DNA of 64,000 nucleotides from Piromyces finnis finn (GCA_002104945.1 MCFH01000002.1:1240001-1304000), one strand, 5' to 3'. Shown: positions 4,833 through 42,291, counted from the stretch's first letter. Numbers and translations are program-made. The notes: generated from the sequence alone by a model not told the origin.

Positions 4833-5558
4833 GAATTAGCTGATAAGGTTGAAAAGTTAAGACAAAAACATTTATTAGAAACTACAGGAAAATTAGAAGA
4901 ATATAGAAGAAGACATTTAAGTTTAGCTCATCGTACCTTAAAAATAATGAAGCAAGTTTACATATTAAGAAACAGAGGATATTCAATAAGACCAGAAGAA
5001 GAAACCTTAAAGGTTCGTTTAGAAAATTTAGCTACCAGTTTAAGAAAATCATCTCAATTTAGAGGCCGTGTTGAAGAGTTATGGGCTCATTTACAAATGA
5101 TTAGAGATCATCCAGGAGCATCATGGTATAATTTAGCTAGTTCAACTACAACAAATATTAATAATAGCAATAGTAATGCCTTAAACAGCAACATCAATAA
5201 TAATCATAATAAATTATCATCATCTAGTAAGGGCAATGGTAATTTGACTCCAGCTAACAATAACAGTAATTTAGGTAGTAACGGAAATAATATAAAGAAT
5301 GGTGAAATGAATTCACAACCTGGTAGATATGTTGTTGATGAAGAAGGTTTACAAACCATTCATAAGATTTTAACTGAACACCAACATGGATTATCAATAC
5401 TTACTGATTATGTTAAAAAGAATTCAAAGGAAATTGAAGACATGTATCGTGGTTATCATGAACCAGGTCCACATTATCTTAATATTCAACAAAATCGTTT
5501 AGATCAACACTATCCTAATTCATTAGCAAGCACTTCTACTTTAACTCCATTAAAGTAA
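3442..5558 (+). CDS. NUP54: FG/GLFG nucleoporin Nup54/Nup57 family, about 5 exons
   Basis: N-terminal FG and GLFG repeats; spliced core ELRKIQEYWNPQSPNCQFKHYFYN...LWRQAQKNNPDSSCMVPAIAIGFDGIKKR...RNRGYSIRPEEETLKVRLE is typical of the Nup54/57 alpha-beta and coiled-coil regions. Confidence 0.9.
3655..3960 (+). repeat. 42-bp coding tandem repeat (GSNNTSNTTGTGLF), 5 near-identical copies plus degenerate copies
   Basis: ggttcc recurs at 3655, 3697, 3739, 3781 and 3823. Confidence 0.95.
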
Positions 5559-5789
5559 TTTCATAAACAACTTAGAAATGATAAAACAAATATATATAAA
5601 TAAAGTTTATTTTTTTATTAGTTGAAAATTTATAATTTTTTAATAATTTCATATTTATAGTTTTATTTATTCATTTTATCTTAAATTATATTAGTATAAA
5701 GTGTAACTTTTTTTATTTAATTTATTAATAAATAAAAGAAATATTTATAACAGTTTTTAAATAAAAATAATGTATAAAACAAAATACAC

Positions 5790-5799
5790 ATCACGTGAT
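5790..5799. promoter_or_regulatory. Palindromic E-box ATCACGTGAT (bHLH site of Cbf1/SREBP type) about 135 bp upstream of the metaxin ATG
   Basis: Perfect 10-bp palindrome containing four G/C bases in very AT-rich intergenic DNA; function not demonstrated. Confidence 0.45.
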
Positions 5800-5934
5800 A
5801 AATTTAAATTTAAATGCGTATCACAAGTATTACAAAGAAAGTTATGATTATATTTAATATTTATTTGCGTTGTGTAATTTTATTTTATTTTTTTTTTTTT
5901 TTTTATTAATAATTCATAGTCTAAAATAATTAAA

Positions 5935-7131
5935 ATGTTTGAATTGTACTCTTGGGGTTCAGCTTATGATTTGCTTTCATTTGATCCAGCTTGTCTTGCA
6001 GCACAAGTAATCATTAATTATTTTATATAATTATATAAATATAACACTTTATTATAATTAATATAAGTAGAACATTATATATAATTCATTGTATTTAATA
6101 TGAAATTAAACATTATAAGGCTTACTTAATATTTTCAAAAGCTGAATGGGAATTACATGAATCTCAATCAACAAAATCTCTTGGTATTCTATTTTTATTA
6201 TTATTTTTTTTTCTTACTTAATAAAACAGTTAAACCAATAATACTTTATATTAAAATAATTTTTATTTTTAAATTTATTATTGGTTGAATAATTAATATT
6301 TCAGGATTACCCATTTTAAAAGATGGAATGACTGAAGTTCAAGAATTATTTAAGATTATTAACTATTTAAAAAAAAGGGGATATAATATTGATGAAAAAG
6401 CAGGTCTTTCAAAAAGCGAATTAGCTGAATCATTAGCGTAATTATACCTTTCCGTTTACTTGTATATTTTATTTTGTACTATAATTTAATTAATAACAAT
6501 GACCTATATATATATATGATGTTAATAATAGTTTTACAGCTTTAATTGAAAATAATCTTTATGATGCATTGGTAAAAAAAAAAAAATAAAACAAAACAAT
6601 ATACCTACCAGATATTTATGTTTTTTTTTAAATAAAATATTTATTTATTCGTTTATATAATATATAATAATATAAATATTAAATTCAATAGTTATATATA
6701 ATGTGGTTGGATAATGAAAATAATACAAAGAAAGCACAACAACAAACCTATAATAAATCTTTATCATTTATCGAGCGTTACTTCTTACAGGGGAAAATTC
6801 AAGAAACTGCTAAGGAACGTCTCAAGGATATGGAACTTGTAAAAGTTAATGATGAATTAGTTCCAGAGGTATTTTTATTCCTTCTTTTTTTTTTTTTTTT
6901 TCAAAATTAAAAGTTGTTTTACAATTATGGAAAAACTAATGTATTTTTCTTTCAAATTTCAATATAAGGTTTATTTAAATGCTCATGATGCTTATGCTTC
7001 ATTATCTACAAAACTTGGAAATAAATCATACTTTTTCGGTGATAAACCTTCAACTTTAGATGCTATTGCTTATGGTCATTTAGCTATACATTGTTATCCA
7101 AATCTTCAAAATCCAAAGCTTTTTAGTAAGT

Positions 7132-32679: not shown

Positions 32680-35101
32680 TTTTGGATAATATTATTGTAA
32701 AAGAAACTTTTTCTCAATATTGCTTAATTTATATTAAAAAAAGTATTTATACTTTTTCAAATTCAACACTTTTTTTTTTTTCTTTAAGAAATTATTTAAA
32801 ATTAACTTTAAAAAACGTTTAACTTTTTATATATTAAATGCGTATTTTTAAATATAATAAATATGAATAAGAAAAAAATATATATAATAACATAATTATA
32901 TATTTTTTCTTTTAGCTAATTAAATGATTTTACTAAAGATAAAATAAATTCATTACTTTATTATATTGATGATGAGCAAGTTTGTTTTATCTTGTTTTAT
33001 TTTTTATTATTATTGTTGTGGTTGTAGTTGTTGTTGATAAAAGATTTTATTTTTATATTTATTAATTATATTTAATTTTATTATACTTTTTTTTTTTTTT
33101 GTTTATTATTATTATTCTTTATCTTTTAACTTTATTTTTTATTGATCTTTATTTTTTCCCTTTAAACTAAAAAGACTATTTTCATTTTCAATTATTAGTT
33201 TTATAAATTAATCAGAAAAAAAAAAAAAGATGTAATGAATTCTTTTAAAAATTAAAACAAATATATTATTTAGATATAAATAATCAAAATATCTATTATT
33301 AAATATATTTGAAATTATTTCTAGTTTTATATATTAGTTAATAGTTTGTTTTTCTTTTCTTTATAGTTTTAATTTCTATTTATTGTGTAAATAAAATTTA
33401 CTCAATGAATTGAAAATAATCATTTTATTTTAAGGTAAAAAAAAAAAAAAAAGAAAAAAGAAAAAGAATACATTATTAAAATAGAAATTCATTTTTCAAA
33501 ATTAATTAAAATTAAAGTTAAATATATCATCTAGAGGATAAATTAAATTTTTATCATTCACAAAAAAATTTTAATTAAAAATATAATTATATGAATGAAT
33601 AAATAAATAAATAAATAAATATATCTATATTTATGTAATTAATACCACATTAAATAAATGAATAAATAAATAAATTACTAATATTATATGTAAGAGGTTT
33701 AAAATTTAAAACAAAGCATACTATTATCTTTTTTTCATTTATTTCTACCTACAAATTTAAAAGTTTTAATGATTAGTAAGAATTAAAAAAAAAAAATAAA
33801 GAATATAACTATTTTTATCAATGGCATGATTTATTTATAAATATAGTTGTCCTTCTTTTATTTACTAATGATCAATAGCCAGTTTTTATTTTTCGTTACC
33901 GCTTTTATTTTTTTTTGTCATGCTTTTTAGGAATGATTTCTATAAATAATAATAAATGACTTGTTTGAGTATGCTTCAAATGGTTTATTTTTGTTCCTAA
34001 AATTTTTTTCAAGTTACCATTTTTTAATTTATTTTTAATTTATTTTTATTAGAGTAATCTTTATTTTATTATTGATTAAAGTTTGCGTCATCGTAGTACA
34101 AAACACAAAAATAGTTGATTGTTAATATTATGGAAAACGCCAAAAAAGAAAATGATTAATACATTTTGTATAGTTACAACAGGAATAATGATTTGATTGG
34201 ATAAAAGATCAAAATAATTTAGTATTATGTAAATGGATAGAAAAGTTTTAATTTGTAAATTATTAAATAAAAAGGTAACAAAACAAAAAAAAAAAGAGAA
34301 AGCATCATATGAAGAAGAAAAGTAAAAAAAGATTCCTTTAAAAAATATATTTTTCATAATAAAGAAAGAAGTAAAATAAATCATCAATGAAAAAAAAAGG
34401 TATTATAAGCTCAATACATCAAAGTTATATTAACATAAATAATATTAAAAAAAAAAAAAGGATAAATCAATTTATTTTATTTTATTCCTTATATTTATAT
34501 AAAAATAGGTATAATTGTATAATTGTATAATAATAATTTTTAAAAGATTGATCATTGTTTGTAGGAAATAAAGAAAAAAAAAAAAAAGAAAAAAAGAAAT
34601 CCCTTTTTTATTATATAAATACATGTATAATGAATGGTTTGATTCTATAACGGCATTTTTTAAAAAATTAAAAAATTTGCTCCTTTATTCTAAACAAATA
34701 AACAAACCATACCTAAATCATATCAATAATAAAATAGCCCTTTTCTTTTCATTCATTTATTTAATAAAGAAAAAAAAGGATATTTCTTTTTTTTTAAAAA
34801 TATAAAATTGAGAAATTCTTTTAAAAATAATTAAAAAAAAAAAGGTTACACTAAAAATTTATTTTAAAATTTTTAAAAATTAATCTCCATTTTTATTAAA
34901 AAAAATTTTTTTTTTTTTTTTTTTTTTCTGCAAGACATTAAAAACCGAAAACCACCAATTACCCTCATTTTAAATTTGAAAAAGTTTTTTTTTTTTTTTT
35001 ATACAAATTTAAAAAAAAAATATTTTTTTTTGTCAAAAGAATAAATTATAATTTCATTGAATTGATATTTTAGACTTTTCATTATAATAAAAAGAATAAA
35101 A

Positions 35102-36358
35102 ATGCAAGCAGATATTGAAGAATTAAGAGACATAAGAAACTCTTATTTCAAAAATAATACTTATCAAGAAAATAAAAGAAACAATACATATAACTACGAA
35201 AGAAATGGAAGAAATAGCAGATATTCCTATAGCAATAATAGTTACAATGATAACTTTGATGATAATAAAGAAGAAAACATTGAATTTATACCTAAAACTA
35301 TTAGAAAATATAATTTAATATATTGTATCATATTTTTATACTTTATATATTCTATTATATCTAATTCAATGATATGTGGTATCATTGTATTAAATGTAAT
35401 AGTATGTATATTATGGAAAATAGCTATATATAATAAGCAAAAATACTATGATGATGAATTATTAATATTCATGAACAATAATTTTACTGTCTCATGGAAT
35501 AATTTAGTTAATAAAAAAAGATATTGGGTCCTCATTACTTCAGTATTTTCACATGAAAGTATTATTCATTTGGCAAACAATATGATTACATTTTATTATA
35601 TTGCATTTTCAGTAAGTATTAAAAAAAAAGTATAACAATAAAGAATTGAAAAGGAAAAAATAATAAAGTATAGCAATAAGGTGTTAAAAAAATAAAATTT
35701 AAATTACGTTAAACAATTATCCTAATTAACTAATAATAAATTATAATAATTGAACTATTTTATTTTATATTAACGTGCTTTCTAGTTAATAAACCATATT
35801 GGGAAAAAAAGGTTTATAATAGCTTATTTATTATCAGGAATTGGCTCTTCCTATTTTCATGCTCTTTTCTATCATATGATTGTTCCAAAATTAAAGAGAA
35901 ACTACAATAACCTTTATTTGTTTAATTTATTTTATTCCTCATCCTCATCTATTGAAGATTCATATGATGATGTTTCAAGTCTCGGTGCTTCAGGCGCCAT
36001 TACAGGTATTGACACAATATTTTCCTGTCTATTTCCGACAAGTACTGTCATCTATTATGATTTAGAATTACCTTCATGGCTATATATGATAGTATTTATG
36101 GTTGTAGATATTTATCGTTCTATTACACTAACTAACGGTGATATTGATACCATCGGTCATGTTGGAGGAGGTAAATATTCATATAATATACTCTTATTTA
36201 AATATACAATAATTCTTAAATTATAATATTTAATTACTAATTTTTTTTTTTGTTTATATATATCTATATACTTATTATTTCTTTTAGGAATTGTTGGCTA
36301 TATTTATTATTCTTATAATTTAAAAAAAAATAGAAAAAGACGTTTTATCTATAATTAA
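35102..36358 (+). CDS. PARL-derived rhomboid protease, copy B, lacking the long N-terminal extension; 3 exons
   Basis: YWVLITSVFSH, HLANNM, LGASG, GHVGG; same two intron positions as the 15708-17403 gene; last exon GIVGYIYYSYNLKKNRKRRFIYN, stop 36356-36358. Confidence 0.85.
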
Positions 36359-36517
36359 AATAGAATTATATAATTTATAAAAAATACATTGATTTTAAAT
36401 TTTAAACCTATACAAATGATATTATATCTGATCTTTTAAAAATTTTTTTTTTTTTTTTTTTTTGAATTAGTTAATATAGAATTAATATTTAATAAAAACT
36501 ACCTTTTTTAATACCTA

Positions 36518-36658
<141 letters not shown>

Positions 36659-37342
36659 TATTGTACTTCTTTTTTAAAATATATATATATAATATTACGA
36701 AATTAAGAAACTTTAAAGTTAATAAATTACAATATGATATATATAAATTTTAAATATCTTTTATAATTATTATTATCATCCAAAACTTGTTTTGTATTTT
36801 TAAATTATTTATCTATCGAATACATTTAATATAAATAATAATTATAAATATTTCTTATATTGAATATTGATATAAATAATAATAAAAAATAATTGTAAAG
36901 AAAGGCTAAATTAACCCCTAATTATAAATTAGGGCCATGTATGAAATTGAAAAGGCATTTAAATGTTCGGATAATTTAGTTCTTGAATAAGCTGGATCAT
37001 ATATTAAAAAGTCGGAACTCTTTAAAGTTTTATAATCACCGGTATAACCATAAACGGCAACCCAATGCTGATTACCAGATGTGTTTATAGCACCATATGG
37101 AACGATACGACCAGCTCTAAGAGAGTTCAAAACAATTTGTAAAGAAGGTGAATTTACGATTTTAAAACCTAAATCATTGAAACTAGAATGATAAGCACCA
37201 CAATTAGAAAATGCCATTTTTTTAGCGATATCGTAAGGAGTATTTAATTTATTTTGAATTCGATTAAGAGCCATAGTAATTGAAGTTATACAGCATCCAT
37301 ACTTTTTTATCGTACAACCAGGAGTATATTCATTTGAATAAT
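36659..37342. repeat. Near-identical duplicate of 39679-40362 (offset 3020 bp)
   Basis: By-eye alignment shows only 4 substitutions (36678, 36792, 37325, 37337) in about 685 bp. Confidence 0.9.
36918..37342 (-). pseudogene. 5'-truncated copy of the C39-like peptidase domain (no signal peptide, no SH3b domains)
   Basis: Almost identical to the 3' part of 39938-40858. The ORF-track start at 37460 is TTG in low-complexity DNA; the first in-frame ATG lies downstream of the catalytic Cys. Confidence 0.7.
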
Positions 37343-38076
37343 ATTTAGTATGATAAAGAATACTTTTAATAAAGTACAATAATTCTTTTTTATCATATAG
37401 ATTCTTATTATTATTTATTTTTTTAAAAAAAAAAAAAAGAAAAAGAACCTTGGAAAGCAATTCTAACTGATAACTATATTCAATGTAGTGTATAAAGGTA
37501 TTACTATATCATATGAAATATATGAAATAGTTACAAAAAAAAAAAAAAAAAAATAGAATAAACAATAATTATTCTATTTTATTATATAATGAAATTTTTG
37601 ATATTAATTATTATTAATAGTAAAATAAATAAATTTGAATAATTTAATGGCTTATTTATTCATTCTTTTAGTTTTAAAAACATTCTTCTTCTTTTTCTTT
37701 TTTTTTTTTTTTTTTTCTGTTATTTAAAAAATGTAAATGTATAAATGTGGGATTATCTATTTTTCTTTTAAAATTATTTATATAAATTCTATTAAACTTT
37801 TTTCTTTTTGGATATATTATTTTTATCCTCAAATTATTTACATTATAAAATTTTCTTTTTTTTTCTGTCAAGACAATAAAAACAAAAAAATTACCAATAA
37901 CTTTAATTTGAAAAATATTTTTTATAAAAGTCTAAAAAAAAAAAAAATAAAAAATTAAAATTATTTAAATAATTATTTTAAATTTTATGTTGAATTGAAT
38001 ATAAAATAAATAAAAATAATAAATAAATAAATAATAGTAATAACTAAATAAAACAACAATAATAAAAAGAATAAAA

Positions 38077-39232
38077 ATGCAACCAGATATTGAGGAATTA
38101 AGAGGCATAAGAAACTCGTATTTCAAAAATAATACTTATCAAAAAAATAAAAGAAATAATACATATAATTATGAGAAAAATGAAAGAAATAATGAATATT
38201 CCTATGACAATAGTAGGAATAATGATAGCTTTAATAACACTAATAGAAGAGCAACTAATGGTGTAATAGAAAAAATTGAGTTTATAATCAAAATTATTTT
38301 TAAAAAAAATATAAATGTGGTATATGGTATTATTGTATTAAATGTAATAGTACATATATTATGGGAAATTGCGAGCTATAATAAAGAAGAATTTTATGAT
38401 GAAGAATTATTAAGATTCATGAACAATCATTTTACTATTTCATGGAATAATTTAATAAAAAGAAAAAGATATTGGACTCTTATTACTTCAACATTTTCAC
38501 ATAAAAGTATTATTCATTTGACGAGTAATATGTCTACATTTTATTATTTTGCATTACCGGTAAGTATAAAAATAAATAAAAAAATAAAATAAAATAATTT
38601 GAATTATATTAAATAATTATTCCAATTACAATTAACGTAATTAACTAATATATTAATAAATTATAGTAATTGACTAAATTATTTTTTATTTTAACATGCT
38701 TTTAGGTAATAAATCGTATTGGAAAAAAAAGATTTTTAATGGCTTATTTTTTAGCAGGAATTGGTTCTTCCTATTCTCATGTCTTTTTCTATCATATAGT
38801 TGTCCCAAAATTAATTAAAAACTATAATAGAAATTACTTGTTTGATTTATTCTATTCCTCATATATGAAATATTCATATGATAATGTTTCAAGTCTTGGT
38901 GCTTCAGGTGCCATTACAGGTATTAATACAATATTTTCATGCCTATTTCCAACAAGACTTGTCTCCTATAATAATCGTTTAAGATTACCTTCATGGTTAT
39001 ATATGGTATTATTTATGGTTGGTGATTTCTATCGTTCTGTTACATTAACTAACGGTAATATTGATACTATTGGTCATGTTGGAGGAGGTAAATATATTCA
39101 TATAATATATTCTTATTCAAATATACAATAATTTTTAAATTTTAATATTTAATTACTTTAAATTTTTATATATTTTATTATCCCTTAATAGGAATTGTTG
39201 GTTATATTTACTATTTTTATAACCTTATTTAA
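38077..39232 (+). CDS. PARL-derived rhomboid protease, copy C, tandem paralog of copy B; 3 exons
   Basis: YWTLITSTFSH, HLTSNM, LGASG, GHVGG; same intron positions; stop 39230-39232. Confidence 0.87.
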
Positions 39233-39602
39233 TAATCATCATTAAAAGCCTCATTTTTTCCAAGAAGAAAGGAAAAAAAAAATTGTAAAAAAAAATTATA
39301 TATTATTTATAATTAAAATAAAACTAAAATTACTTTATTCATTAAAAATGTATTATTGATTTTAAAGCTATATAAATTATATTATACCAGATTTTAAAAA
39401 AAAATTTTTTTTTTTTCTAAATTAATTCATATAGAACTATTATAGCATGTTCCGATAAAAATCACTTTATTTTTTCTTTAAAAAAAAAAATAACTATCCT
39501 TTTTTTTTTTTTTCTATTTATTGTACTTCCTGAAAAAAAATATGTTATTACAAAATTTTAAAAATAATAAATTACAATAAAATATAAATAAACTTTAAAT
39601 AA

Positions 39603-39678
<76 letters not shown>

Positions 39679-39937
39679 TATTGTACTTCTTTTTTAATAT
39701 ATATATATATAATATTACGAAATTAAGAAACTTTAAAGTTAATAAATTACAATATGATATATATAAATTTTAAATATCTTTTATAATTATTATTATCATC
39801 CAAAACTTGTTCTGTATTTTTAAATTATTTATCTATCGAATACATTTAATATAAATAATAATTATAAATATTTCTTATATTGAATATTGATATAAATAAT
39901 AATAAAAAATAATTGTAAAGAAAGGCTAAATTAACCC

Positions 39938-40858
39938 CTAATTATAAATTAGGGCCATGTATGAAATTGAAAAGGCATTTAAATGTTCGGATAATTTAGT
40001 TCTTGAATAAGCTGGATCATATATTAAAAAGTCGGAACTCTTTAAAGTTTTATAATCACCGGTATAACCATAAACGGCAACCCAATGCTGATTACCAGAT
40101 GTGTTTATAGCACCATATGGAACGATACGACCAGCTCTAAGAGAGTTCAAAACAATTTGTAAAGAAGGTGAATTTACGATTTTAAAACCTAAATCATTGA
40201 AACTAGAATGATAAGCACCACAATTAGAAAATGCCATTTTTTTAGCGATATCGTAAGGAGTATTTAATTTATTTTGAATTCGATTAAGAGCCATAGTAAT
40301 TGAAGTTATACAGCATCCATACTTTTTTATCGTACAACCAGGAGCATATTCATTTGGATAATCATATTGTTTAAGAAGTTGAGTAGTAAGTTCAATTCTA
40401 CCACTATTTTGAGTTGAAGGTATAATAGTAGATGAACCTTTTGGTATCAAGTAGGTCATACTACAATAACCATTTCCGGTGACACCCCAACTACTATTAA
40501 ATGGATCTCTTCCATAGTACGTCACAACAGTACCACTAACTAAAGTAGATATAGCATTATAAGAGGTACTTGGACCAGTTCTAAAGTTAAGAGATGTTGT
40601 GGTTTTATAATTTGGATTAATTGTAACTTTTGTTAAATATTGAGTACTACAATAACCTTTGTAAAATTTGGCCCAACCATTTGATACGCTAGTAACATAA
40701 ATATAATCATTGTTTTTTAAAGAACCTACAATAGATGAACTTGTACTTGCTTTACTTCTAATATTTAATTTAGACTCAACATTTACTTTATATACAGCAC
40801 CAGCAATTGTTACTATTACATTAAACAAAATTAATAATAATATTTTTAATGCATTCAT
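39938..40858 (-). CDS. Secreted, intronless protein: signal peptide + 2 bacterial SH3 (SH3b/SH3_3) domains + papain-fold C39-like peptidase domain
   Basis: MNALKILLLILFNVIVTIAG signal; LNIRSKASTSSSIVGSL...NGWAK...GYCSTQYL and LNFRTGPSTSYNAISTL...W...GYCSMTYL (SH3b); LKQYD (Gln), YGCCITSITM (Cys), QHWVAVYGY (His), LIYDP (Asp). Confidence 0.85.
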   Translation of the reverse strand: MNALKILLLILFNVIVTIAGAVYKVNVESKLNIRSKASTSSSIVGSLKNNDYIYVTSVSNGWAKFYKGYCSTQYLTKVTINPNYKTTTSLNFRTGPSTSYNAISTLVSGTVVTYYGRDPFNSSWGVTGNGYCSMTYLIPKGSSTIIPSTQNSGRIELTTQLLKQYDYPNEYAPGCTIKKYGCCITSITMALNRIQNKLNTPYDIAKKMAFSNCGAYHSSFNDLGFKIVNSPSLQIVLNSLRAGRIVPYGAINTSGNQHWVAVYGYTGDYKTLKSSDFLIYDPAYSRTKLSEHLNAFSISYMALIYN

Positions 40859-42291
40859 TTTCTTTTTATAAATAGATATATATATTGATTATTATAGGTA
40901 TAAATAACTAAATAAAAAAAAATTCAAAAAAAAAAAAGGTTTAAAAAATTGATAAATATATATAAAAAAAAATGAAATGAAATAACAAAATAATAATTAA
41001 TATAAATTAATTAAAAAAAATTAATCTTTATTATAACTAATAAATGAAAATTAAATTATAAAATAATTTGATGGCTGTTTATTGTGTCTAGTAAATATTT
41101 ACAATAGGATTTTAATAGATAGCATTTTAAAATCATATTTCATAATAAATATATATATTCGCTTATCATTTAGTTTAATTAAAATATTAATAAAACTTTA
41201 TAATATAATAATTTGGTTTAATTCATTTCTCAAAAAAAATAAATTTAAAAATCTTATAAAATATTAAAAAAGATAATTTTTATAATTTAAAAAATTATTT
41301 TCTTTTCATAAAAATTCATGATTTTATTTGATTTATTGGTCAATTTTCTAAAAAGAATAAAATTATAATAATTAATACCTGATTTTCTAATACTAATTTT
41401 TAAATTCTTATACCTCTTTTTAATAAAAAGTATAGACTTTATTCTGGTAGTAAATATAATATATATAGTTATTTATACAATTTTATACAATTTTATACAA
41501 ATGTTTTATTTAAAAAAAATTAATTCAATTTAATACAAATATTTTATTTTATTAAATGCTTTATTTAAAAAATTAATTTTAAAGTATATGAAACTAAAGA
41601 CAATTATTTAATTTTAAATAGGTAGTATAGGTTTCATAGACAATTTCATAATAGTTGTATTACAAATTAAAGGATGAATAATTATATATTCTCTAAATAT
41701 TTTGAAATTATTTTTTGTGAATCTTATCATTATCCTTGACATTATTTGCACTAAAAAAATTGAATTCAGTATATTCATAAAAGTAATTAAAGAAAATGAT
41801 CATTTAATCTATTAAAATACCTTTTAAATTATTTTTTTAACACAATTATACTAATATACTAATGTAACCAAATAATAATCCTTATTAAAATGTTAAAAAA
41901 AAAAAGGTAATAATATTAAATATTAAAATTTTAATATTTTTTTTTTAAAGTCATTTTTCCAATTAAAAAAAAAAAAAAAAAAAAAAACTTTTCAAAATTA
42001 AATTAAATTTTTAGAAAAGTCAAGATTTTAAAAAAGTAATTAATAAATGACCAATAAGATTAGTGAATCATCATTAAAACATGGTTATTAAATAGTTGTT
42101 AATTTATGTCAAATTAATCGAACATTTAAAATTTTAATTTACTGTTACACAACTATTTAATTAAATAAAGAAAGGTAAATCATTAAAATGTGACAATTGA
42201 TGATAAATTGATGGTATAAAATATATTATTGGGGATATTGGGGGGTGAAAATAATTCAGAATAATTTTTACGCAATCGACAAAAAATAGTA

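Follow-up and report, generated by a model that had tools for sequence, protein, structure and literature searches.

Anaerobic gut fungi (AGF) have been studied mainly as degraders of plant fibre, and the genes they are known to have acquired from bacteria encode mostly carbohydrate-active enzymes (CAZymes) and metabolic functions. Horizontal gene transfer into these fungi is well known (bioRxiv 10.1101/487215; PMC6712302). A different eukaryote, Trichomonas, has a laterally acquired antibacterial toolkit that includes NlpC/P60 peptidases with two SH3b domains (PDB 6bim, 6biq), GH19 and GH25 (PMC12612818). Here we describe a gene at 39938..40858, on the minus strand of a 64,000-nucleotide stretch of the Piromyces finnis genome (GCA_002104945.1, MCFH01000002.1:1240001-1304000; the window), whose product is ordered as signal peptide, SH3b, SH3b, linker and C39_2-like cysteine peptidase. 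On balance we favour the reading that a gene transferred from Bacillota now encodes a secreted fungal enzyme that cuts the peptidoglycan of bacterial walls.

The resemblance to the Trichomonas vaginalis proteins NlpC_A1/A2 is close. These two structures, 6biq and 6bim, are the top Foldseek matches of the full-length model, and in both cases a predicted secreted protein of apparent bacterial ancestry, in an anaerobic eukaryote living among a microbiota, joins a tandem SH3b pair to a cysteine peptidase. Both lineages also have a multi-enzyme set, with GH19 and GH25 in Trichomonas and GH24, GH25, amidase and NlpC/P60 in AGF. The P. finnis protein differs in its catalytic domain, a Peptidase_C39_2 of classical papain topology near families C47, C10, C39 and C71, in its fungal host, and in being known from sequence rather than enzymology. 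Laterally acquired wall hydrolases of eukaryotes are already known, and the fungal peptidase would join them with a different catalytic family (C39_2) and host lineage.

The initial annotation had described an open reading frame at exactly these coordinates, with a signal peptide, two SH3b-like repeats, an intact Gln/Cys/His/Asp set and no dockerin, and our analysis agrees with it on each of these points. The coding sequence is complete and intronless, running from an ATG through 306 codons to a stop, as seen in the open reading frame listing, the Pfam matches and colinear transcript-like contigs. Residues 1-20 (40799..40858, minus strand, as are all features of the protein) resemble a signal peptide, with a short charged start, a hydrophobic core and then AGA. 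The assignment comes from visual inspection and from an AlphaFold model, in which residues 3-16 form a helix of low predicted local distance difference test score (pLDDT), and all AGF homologs have an N-terminus of similar kind. The first SH3b domain covers residues of about 21-79 (40622..40798; best Pfam SH3_3 stretch 30-75, pLDDT >90) and the second residues of about 82-142 (40433..40615), where a second SH3_3 stretch coincides with a beta-strand model. A flexible Ser/Thr/Pro-rich linker (residues 143-152, 40403..40432, pLDDT <50) leads into the papain-fold cysteine peptidase domain at 39941..40402, which was delimited by Pfam, a domain model, fold matches and residue conservation. The hidden Markov model (HMM) searches that the initial annotation had proposed placed both families above their gathering thresholds: SH3_3, present as two stretches, scored 61.6 bits (cutoff 27, E 8.2e-17), and Peptidase_C39_2 scored 26.9 bits (cutoff 24, E 7.8e-6) across positions 4-143 of its 143-position profile. 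Pfam found no CBM_10 dockerin in the protein, the module by which a cellulosome component would be recognised.

The full-length AlphaFold model, built on a 16-sequence alignment, has a mean pLDDT of 86.9 and consists of the helix at 3-16, all-beta domains at 21-79 and 84-139, the disordered stretch 143-152 and then an alpha/beta domain. Its SH3b part aligns with 2krs and 9ovi in Foldseek at template modelling (TM) scores of 0.68-0.71. By sequence, the first SH3b domain matches the solved SH3b domains 2kyb, 9ovi and 2krs, and the second gives weak matches to 8b2g and 6akv. The NCBIfam and PDB sequence matches of the whole protein come through the SH3b part only, and include the EntFM/EntA-D wall-binding proteins, 2kyb, 9ovi, 2kq8, 2krs and the phiSM101 endolysin 4krt. 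The first domain also matches the C-terminal, wall-binding region of the PHROG 1794 phage amidases, which belong to the lysis category; the catalytic domain has no match in PHROGs. Like SH3_3 phage endolysins such as phiSM101 Psm (4krt) and the PHROG 1794 amidases, the fungal protein combines a catalytic domain with tandem SH3_3 repeats and matches them directly in the SH3 region. In contrast to them, its SH3b domains are N-terminal, so that the domain order is reversed, and it is encoded by a chromosomal eukaryotic gene with a predicted eukaryotic signal peptide.

The catalytic motifs are KQY (Q164, codon 40367-69), GCC (C182/C183, 40313-15), HWVAV (H258, 40085-87) and IYDP (D281, 40016-18). 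Q164, G181, C182, H258 and D281 are invariant in 145 aligned bacterial rows, save for one gap at Q164. Interpain A is the sole sequence-level match of the family profile in the PDB, and the G-C and Q-H-W-V segments of the profile align with its stretches around the nucleophile Cys and the catalytic His. Structure prediction, another check the initial annotation had proposed, gave two all-beta domains and a papain-fold domain; as fold alignments of the full-length model span several domains (root-mean-square deviation, rmsd, 17-21 A), the catalytic domain was refolded alone, on an 83-sequence alignment, and reached pLDDT 97. The VIA-align matches of this domain form a tied block, made up of staphopain C and B (C47, Z 13.1 and 12.9), the Bacillus anthracis 'C39-like peptidase' 3erv (Z 12.5), the pseudomurein endoisopeptidase PeiR (C71, Z 12.2), interpain and SpeB (C10, Z 11.6 and 11.4) and the C39 leader peptidases (Z about 10.5-10.8), and Foldseek concurs. 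The family profile has 328 relatives at E<=1e-10, and the ESM Atlas neighbours carry PF13529. The catalytic domain belongs to PF13529, has the papain fold of clan-CA peptidases and keeps its centre intact.

This refines the 'C39 cysteine peptidase' of the initial annotation: the C39-like PF13529 papain fold with its intact residues stands, while the domain is neither C39 proper nor NlpC/P60. C39 proper is ruled out, since Pfam gave no PF03412 match and the 306-residue protein contains no transporter. With MEROPS C39 domains (PCAT1, ComA, LahT) it shares a papain-like fold and the Gln/Cys/His/Asp arrangement, at VIA Z 10-11; those domains are cytoplasmic N-termini of ABC exporters that cut double-glycine leaders, whereas the fungal protein is predicted to be secreted. 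An NlpC/P60 or CHAP identity is ruled out both by Pfam, which gave no match to either, and by structure, as neither is among the 50 best matches found with the catalytic domain. The full-length model does match NlpC1/2 and other SH3b-bearing NlpC/P60 entries (TM 0.18-0.27, rmsd 17-21 A). Since these matches vanish when the catalytic domain is searched alone, we put them down to the SH3b part and to the two-module layout that the proteins have in common.

The fold matches bring two other substrates into view. One alternative keeps the same origin and architecture and makes the enzyme a protease that, docked on bacterial walls by its SH3b pair, degrades proteins and not peptidoglycan itself, whether these are surface or S-layer proteins of the bacteria or other proteins outside the cell. 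It draws on the best folds being protein endopeptidases (staphopain Z 13.1, interpain 11.6, SpeB 11.4), on interpain A being the profile's one sequence match in the PDB, and on the lack of any NlpC/P60 or CHAP similarity. Set against this, the wall isopeptidase PeiR matches equally well (Z 12.2), the SH3b module of AGF otherwise accompanies peptidoglycan-specific catalytic domains, and C39_2 is catalogued in endolysins, where it co-occurs with Phage_lysozyme2 and NlpC/P60. We consider a protease of this kind unlikely, while giving it more weight than any other alternative. The second substrate would be the wall of fungus-attached methanogens, cut in the manner of a pseudomurein endoisopeptidase. 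PeiR is indeed the top Foldseek match of the catalytic domain (E 2.3e-4, TM 0.53) and has VIA Z 12.2, but it is tied with four unrelated clan-CA families at 18-19% identity, Pfam gives PF13529 and no other peptidase family, and the relatives lie in Bacillota, not in methanogen viruses. Pei enzymes, moreover, have pseudomurein-binding repeats and are not known to use SH3b. Methanogen walls are a very improbable target, and bacterial peptidoglycan remains the substrate we favour.

The relatives of the peptidase point to bacteria. About 18 full-length homologs of AGF-style sequence came out of a word-based search, together with two bacterial proteins of the same architecture, P0039 and P0040, which are 33-36% identical to the query over about 90% of its length. 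These two sit among housekeeping genes, ProRS and RNase J in one case and PNPase, S15, PheT and a Dockerin_1 protein in the other. The same search with the catalytic region alone returned AGF sequences only, which reflects a limit of sensitivity rather than an absence of others, and a profile search was needed. Among 1.84 billion representatives, the catalytic-domain profile matched 1398 proteins at E<=1e-3, of which 68 reached E<=1e-30; for one relative, P0052, the high HMM score is biased, as P0039 and P0040 were part of the query profile. A scan of GTDB species genomes found matches in Acholeplasmatales (two metagenome-assembled genomes, MAGs, one from roe-deer caecum), Anaeroplasma, Erysipelotrichaceae, Faecousia and Acutalibacteraceae, all of them gut Bacillota. 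The same architecture occurs in MAGs of Acholeplasmatales, Anaeroplasma, Erysipelotrichaceae and Acutalibacteraceae, on contigs with housekeeping genes. These bacterial SH3b-SH3b-Peptidase_C39_2 proteins (MBQ9124310.1 of an Acholeplasmatales MAG, P0039 and P0040) are colinear with the fungal one, at 320-327 amino acids, and have an identical Q/C/H/D set. They differ in their bacterial signal peptides and genome contexts and fall outside the AGF clade, and their function is likewise uncharacterised. Neighbours of the catalytic domain in the ESM Atlas (TM 0.86-0.92) are Bacillota clusters with SH3_3 or choline-binding repeats and some tailed-phage clusters.

Phylogenies gather the fungal sequences into a single group. 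In a FastTree of 180 catalytic domains all AGF-type sequences form one clade of 35 rows with a support of 99, and in an unrooted IQ-TREE of 99 rows (LG+C20+F+G4 PMSF) the AGF clade has ultrafast bootstrap (UFBoot) 100 and SH-aLRT 99 and is present in all 200 sampled bootstrap trees. Membership of the clade was checked by names (Neocallimastix californiae ORY74019.1, P. finnis ORX43661.1), by CBM_10-bearing neighbours and by the 16.5% GC at third codon positions (GC3) of P0057. The 80 non-AGF rows have bacterial-type features throughout, and those that were looked up lie on bacterial contigs. The AGF clade joins the bacterial rows at a polytomy shared with P0134, an SH3b protein in a Tad/Flp pilus cluster with an SLH protein, and three larger groups, one of them mostly SH3b-bearing. 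The Firmicutes ancestry for which the initial annotation had suggested a test holds in that the relatives are gut Bacillota and the AGF sequences form one well-supported clade; the nesting within Ruminococcaceae that it had envisaged is not seen, the attachment being a polytomy. The Acholeplasmatales-type SH3b-SH3b-C39_2 group was considered as donor and is unsupported for the same reason.

A bacterial origin of the gene is well supported by these comparisons. They fit a single old transfer from bacteria to AGF, with the tree pointing to no particular donor within Bacillota; since the tree is unrooted, its direction is read from the distribution, with many varied lineages of bacteria and phages on one side and a single phylum of fungi on the other. 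Vertical inheritance from a fungal ancestor would place relatives elsewhere among the fungi, as the initial annotation had noted. No non-AGF eukaryote was found among the 150 best of the 1398 profile matches or among the Atlas neighbours. The literature we searched on gene transfer into AGF, of which our coverage was incomplete, holds no description of this peptidase family. The texts of bioRxiv 10.1101/487215 and PMC6712302 do not mention the family, SH3b or peptidoglycan hydrolases, and in the former GH24 transcripts appear only as a difference in CAZyme repertoire between genera; the supplement text of Murphy et al. mentions neither SH3, C39 nor lysozyme.

The bacterial relative P0134/P0221, a protein of 450 amino acids (SH3b plus a C39_2-like domain; L018 3483-4835 and L019 6001-7353), adjoins an SLH-domain protein and a prepilin peptidase within its pilus cluster. 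Its role may be to remodel the wall while pili are assembled.

The bacterial-type domains and the lack of an intron are what one would expect of a bacterial contaminant joined by misassembly, a possibility raised by the initial annotation. The gene is instead resident fungal DNA and forms part of the host genome. GC content is about 18% across the window. The peptidase gene, with a GC of 0.299, has a GC3 of 0.153, within the 0.15-0.19 of five neighbouring coding segments. Its own contig is recorded as 1.96 Mb long and has intron- or dockerin-bearing fungal genes on both sides of the peptidase. A PL4 lyase with three CBM_10 dockerins, an AGF hallmark, lies 2.3 kb away, and the convergent neighbour is a rhomboid gene in which a GTAAGT...AG intron (about 38561-38705) interrupts the Pfam Rhomboid domain. 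The intronless gene among intron-rich neighbours that the initial annotation had noticed is therefore borne out, with contigs running across the peptidase gene without gap or joint. Synteny is conserved in another AGF: the ortholog P0002, 65% identical, adjoins a two-exon rhomboid gene on a 16-kb metagenome contig of 19% GC. On the AGF metagenome contig L006 the rhomboid-peptidase adjacency is at 4882-5981. Named orthologs occur in Piromyces sp. E2 (two) and Anaeromyces robustus. The host-like GC3, the neighbours, the conserved synteny and the colinear transcript-sized contigs together show that the gene is fungal and not a contaminant. With its presence in runs of three studies and the Piromyces and Anaeromyces orthologs added, and with no non-AGF eukaryote among the 150 best profile matches or the Atlas neighbours to suggest vertical descent, we give next to no credence to either a contaminant or inheritance from a fungal ancestor.

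When words sampled from the gene region were looked up, 60-75% of them were present in each of four public runs from three studies, which contain essentially none of the flanking intergenic DNA. Their contigs, of 882-1111 nt, lie at 39813-40894, 39813-40877, 39924-40894 and 39924-40805 and match the genome with no gaps, no joints and 0-2 differences. Contigs of two runs end at 39813, giving a probable 3' untranslated region (UTR) of ~125 nt at 39813..39937, and contig ends at 40877-40894 give a probable 5' UTR of ~20-36 nt at 40859..40894, both on the minus strand. It is thus probable that the gene is transcribed as an unspliced mRNA with short UTRs; we say only probable because the 'RNA?' label of these runs is a guess.

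The likely target is suggested by the company the SH3b pair keeps. An AGF-type signal peptide with an SH3b pair 47-61% identical to that of the query recurs in AGF in front of other C-terminal domains: Amidase_2 (P0019), GH24 Phage_lysozyme (P0021 and P0029, the latter at L021 745-1695), NlpC/P60 (P0022, L020 4148-4984), Phage_lysozyme2 (P0030, L004 8001-8900) and GH25 (P0032, P0037). P0030 lies between CBM_10-serpin genes and a GH3 gene. P0022 and P0029 are on contigs of 17-18% GC; contigs L004, L020 and L021 have 17-21% GC overall, with CBM_10 neighbours on L004. Murein is the sole substrate of the Amidase_2, GH24, GH25, NlpC/P60 and Phage_lysozyme2 domains. As the SH3b pair is otherwise found on these murein-specific domains in AGF, peptidoglycan is the likeliest target of the peptidase too, and we infer from the domain family and from the AGF partner domains that the pair binds peptidoglycan. 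Homologs of the same architecture are found in Anaeroplasma-type Mollicutes, which have no wall of their own. Rumen mycoplasmas have been described as bacteriolytic (PMC8941964). Peptidase_C39_2 is listed as an endolysin catalytic domain in phages of Gram-positive hosts (PMC8223927; bioRxiv 10.64898/2026.04.25.720813), and one of these two sources gives a C39_2 architecture with Phage_lysozyme2 and NlpC/P60. The case for a peptidoglycan target is circumstantial, and an antibacterial role is plausible.

A mechanism can be proposed on this basis. A gene for a secreted cysteine peptidase of SH3b-SH3b-(C39-like papain-fold) architecture would have passed once, long ago, from Bacillota into the Neocallimastigomycota. 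The protein would leave the hypha by means of its signal peptide and attach, through the tandem SH3b domains, to the peptidoglycan of neighbouring gut bacteria, mainly Gram-positive ones. There Cys182, His258 and Asp281 would form the catalytic centre, Gln164 would serve as the oxyanion residue, and the bond cut would be a peptide bond of the wall, most likely one in the stem peptide or the cross-bridge. Such a cut might weaken or lyse the bacterium or free muropeptides, and so serve competition, nutrient scavenging or both.

Several observations weigh against this reading. The Pfam C39_2 score of the query barely clears its threshold (26.9 against 24), and our literature search found no biochemical characterisation of this C39_2 subfamily. 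The closest solved folds are those of staphopain and SpeB/interpain, which are endopeptidases of proteins in general, of a C39-like protein whose function is unknown and of a pseudomurein isopeptidase; none is an NlpC/P60 or CHAP peptidoglycan peptidase. The direction of transfer is taken from distribution around an unrooted tree, and the RNA nature of the runs from a guessed label. Within the AGF clade, P0057 (loci L024 and L025) has four Chitin_bind_1 (CBM18) modules in place of SH3b, and the nucleophile position reads Ser182-Cys183 in 6 of 24 AGF rows (P0002, P0003, P0006, P0008, P0055 and P0203).

The first of these two variations is part of a wider pattern, as the N-terminal module has been exchanged several times inside the AGF clade. 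P0203 (N. californiae ORY74019.1, 1245 aa), P0063, P0086 and P0095 have long Cys-rich N-terminal repeats that match nothing in Pfam before the C39_2-like domain, and P0051 and P0053 have other N-termini again. SH3b-bearing members are scattered through the clade, so the SH3b-SH3b arrangement is probably ancestral for most of it. The chitin-binding modules of P0057 show that the catalytic domain is not tied to peptidoglycan, and in that protein it appears to have been re-targeted to chitin-containing material. This opens the way to a further alternative, in which the enzyme was domesticated for a role internal to the fungus, remodelling its own wall or processing secreted proteins, with the SH3b pair binding a ligand other than peptidoglycan. 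P0057, the paralogs with Cys-rich repeats and the general expansion and diversification of the family in AGF are all in keeping with such a history. However, SH3b pairs of this kind accompany lysozymes and amidases that have no substrate in the fungus, and the bacterial and phage context is wall-binding throughout. For the P. finnis protein we regard domestication as improbable, more so than a surface protease, and keep to bacterial-wall peptidoglycan as the favoured target.

The second variation touches the query more closely, as P0002 and P0003 are among its closest orthologs. The C182 column is Cys in all 145 bacterial rows. In the AGF rows, Cys182-Cys183 is found in the query, P0004, P0005 and P0051, six have the Ser182-Cys183 pair, and the rest of the 24 have Cys followed by Leu. 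The G-S-C variants could reflect a shift of the nucleophile, a serine enzyme or loss of activity.

Taken together, the fusions and exchanges allow a broader and more tentative proposal, to which we would give somewhat less than even odds of being right. The tandem SH3b pair of AGF may serve as a portable 'bacterial-wall tag', much as dockerins do for other proteins, carried by at least six catalytic types (C39-like peptidase, NlpC/P60, Amidase_2, GH24, GH25 and Phage_lysozyme2) that would form a secreted bacteriolytic toolkit and so influence how the fungi compete with rumen bacteria or feed on them. The C39-like domain would have been re-aimed by swapping this tag, in one case for four chitin-binding modules, and in one subclade the nucleophile is maybe shifting through G-C-L, G-C-C and G-S-C.

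If the favoured reading is true, a secreted wall-targeted peptidase would give AGF an enzymatic means to attack rumen bacteria or feed on them, and more so if it is one of many enzymes that share the SH3b tag. For the parallel case, Trichomonas, there is experimental confirmation. A toolkit of this kind would bear on antagonism between fungi and bacteria in the rumen, on behaviour in co-culture and on the search for new lytic enzymes. As a small protein with a single catalytic domain, the fungal peptidase could also be used to establish what the family does, which is widespread among phages and the Bacillota of the gut.

The peptidase gene is part of a tandem duplication at 35084..40362, found by repeat search and blastn, in which each unit of ~3 kb holds a rhomboid gene on the plus strand and a convergent peptidase copy on the minus strand. 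The two-exon rhomboid paralogs lie at 35102-36226 and 38077-39131. Their duplicated parts are 83-86% identical, and the 3' parts of the peptidase copies 99.3%. The second peptidase copy (36918..37342, minus strand; blastn, tblastn and the Pfam C39_2 match) is truncated at its 5' end, lies in a duplicated stretch of 36918-37460 and retains residues 167-306 only, so that signal peptide, SH3b domains and Gln164 are all absent. This copy is 99.3% identical to the complete gene over 758 nt including the 3' flank by blastn, with 2 nt differences in the coding sequence, and 98.6% identical over 140 amino acids by tblastn. A tblastn search with residues 1-165 found no SH3b or upstream exons for it in 36000-38100. 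Probably the second copy is a pseudogene or a fragment of a gene that gene conversion has kept alike, although the block of 99.3% identity is possibly an effect of assembly. Long (TTA)n/(TAT)n microsatellites stand directly downstream of both peptidase copies, at 36505-36660 and 39609-39680. On the other side of the complete gene, the PL4 lyase is a rhamnogalacturonan lyase whose C-terminal exon, at 43123-44589 on the minus strand, encodes fn3_3, a CBM-like domain III and the three CBM_10 modules; its upstream exons are probably around 45057-45320.

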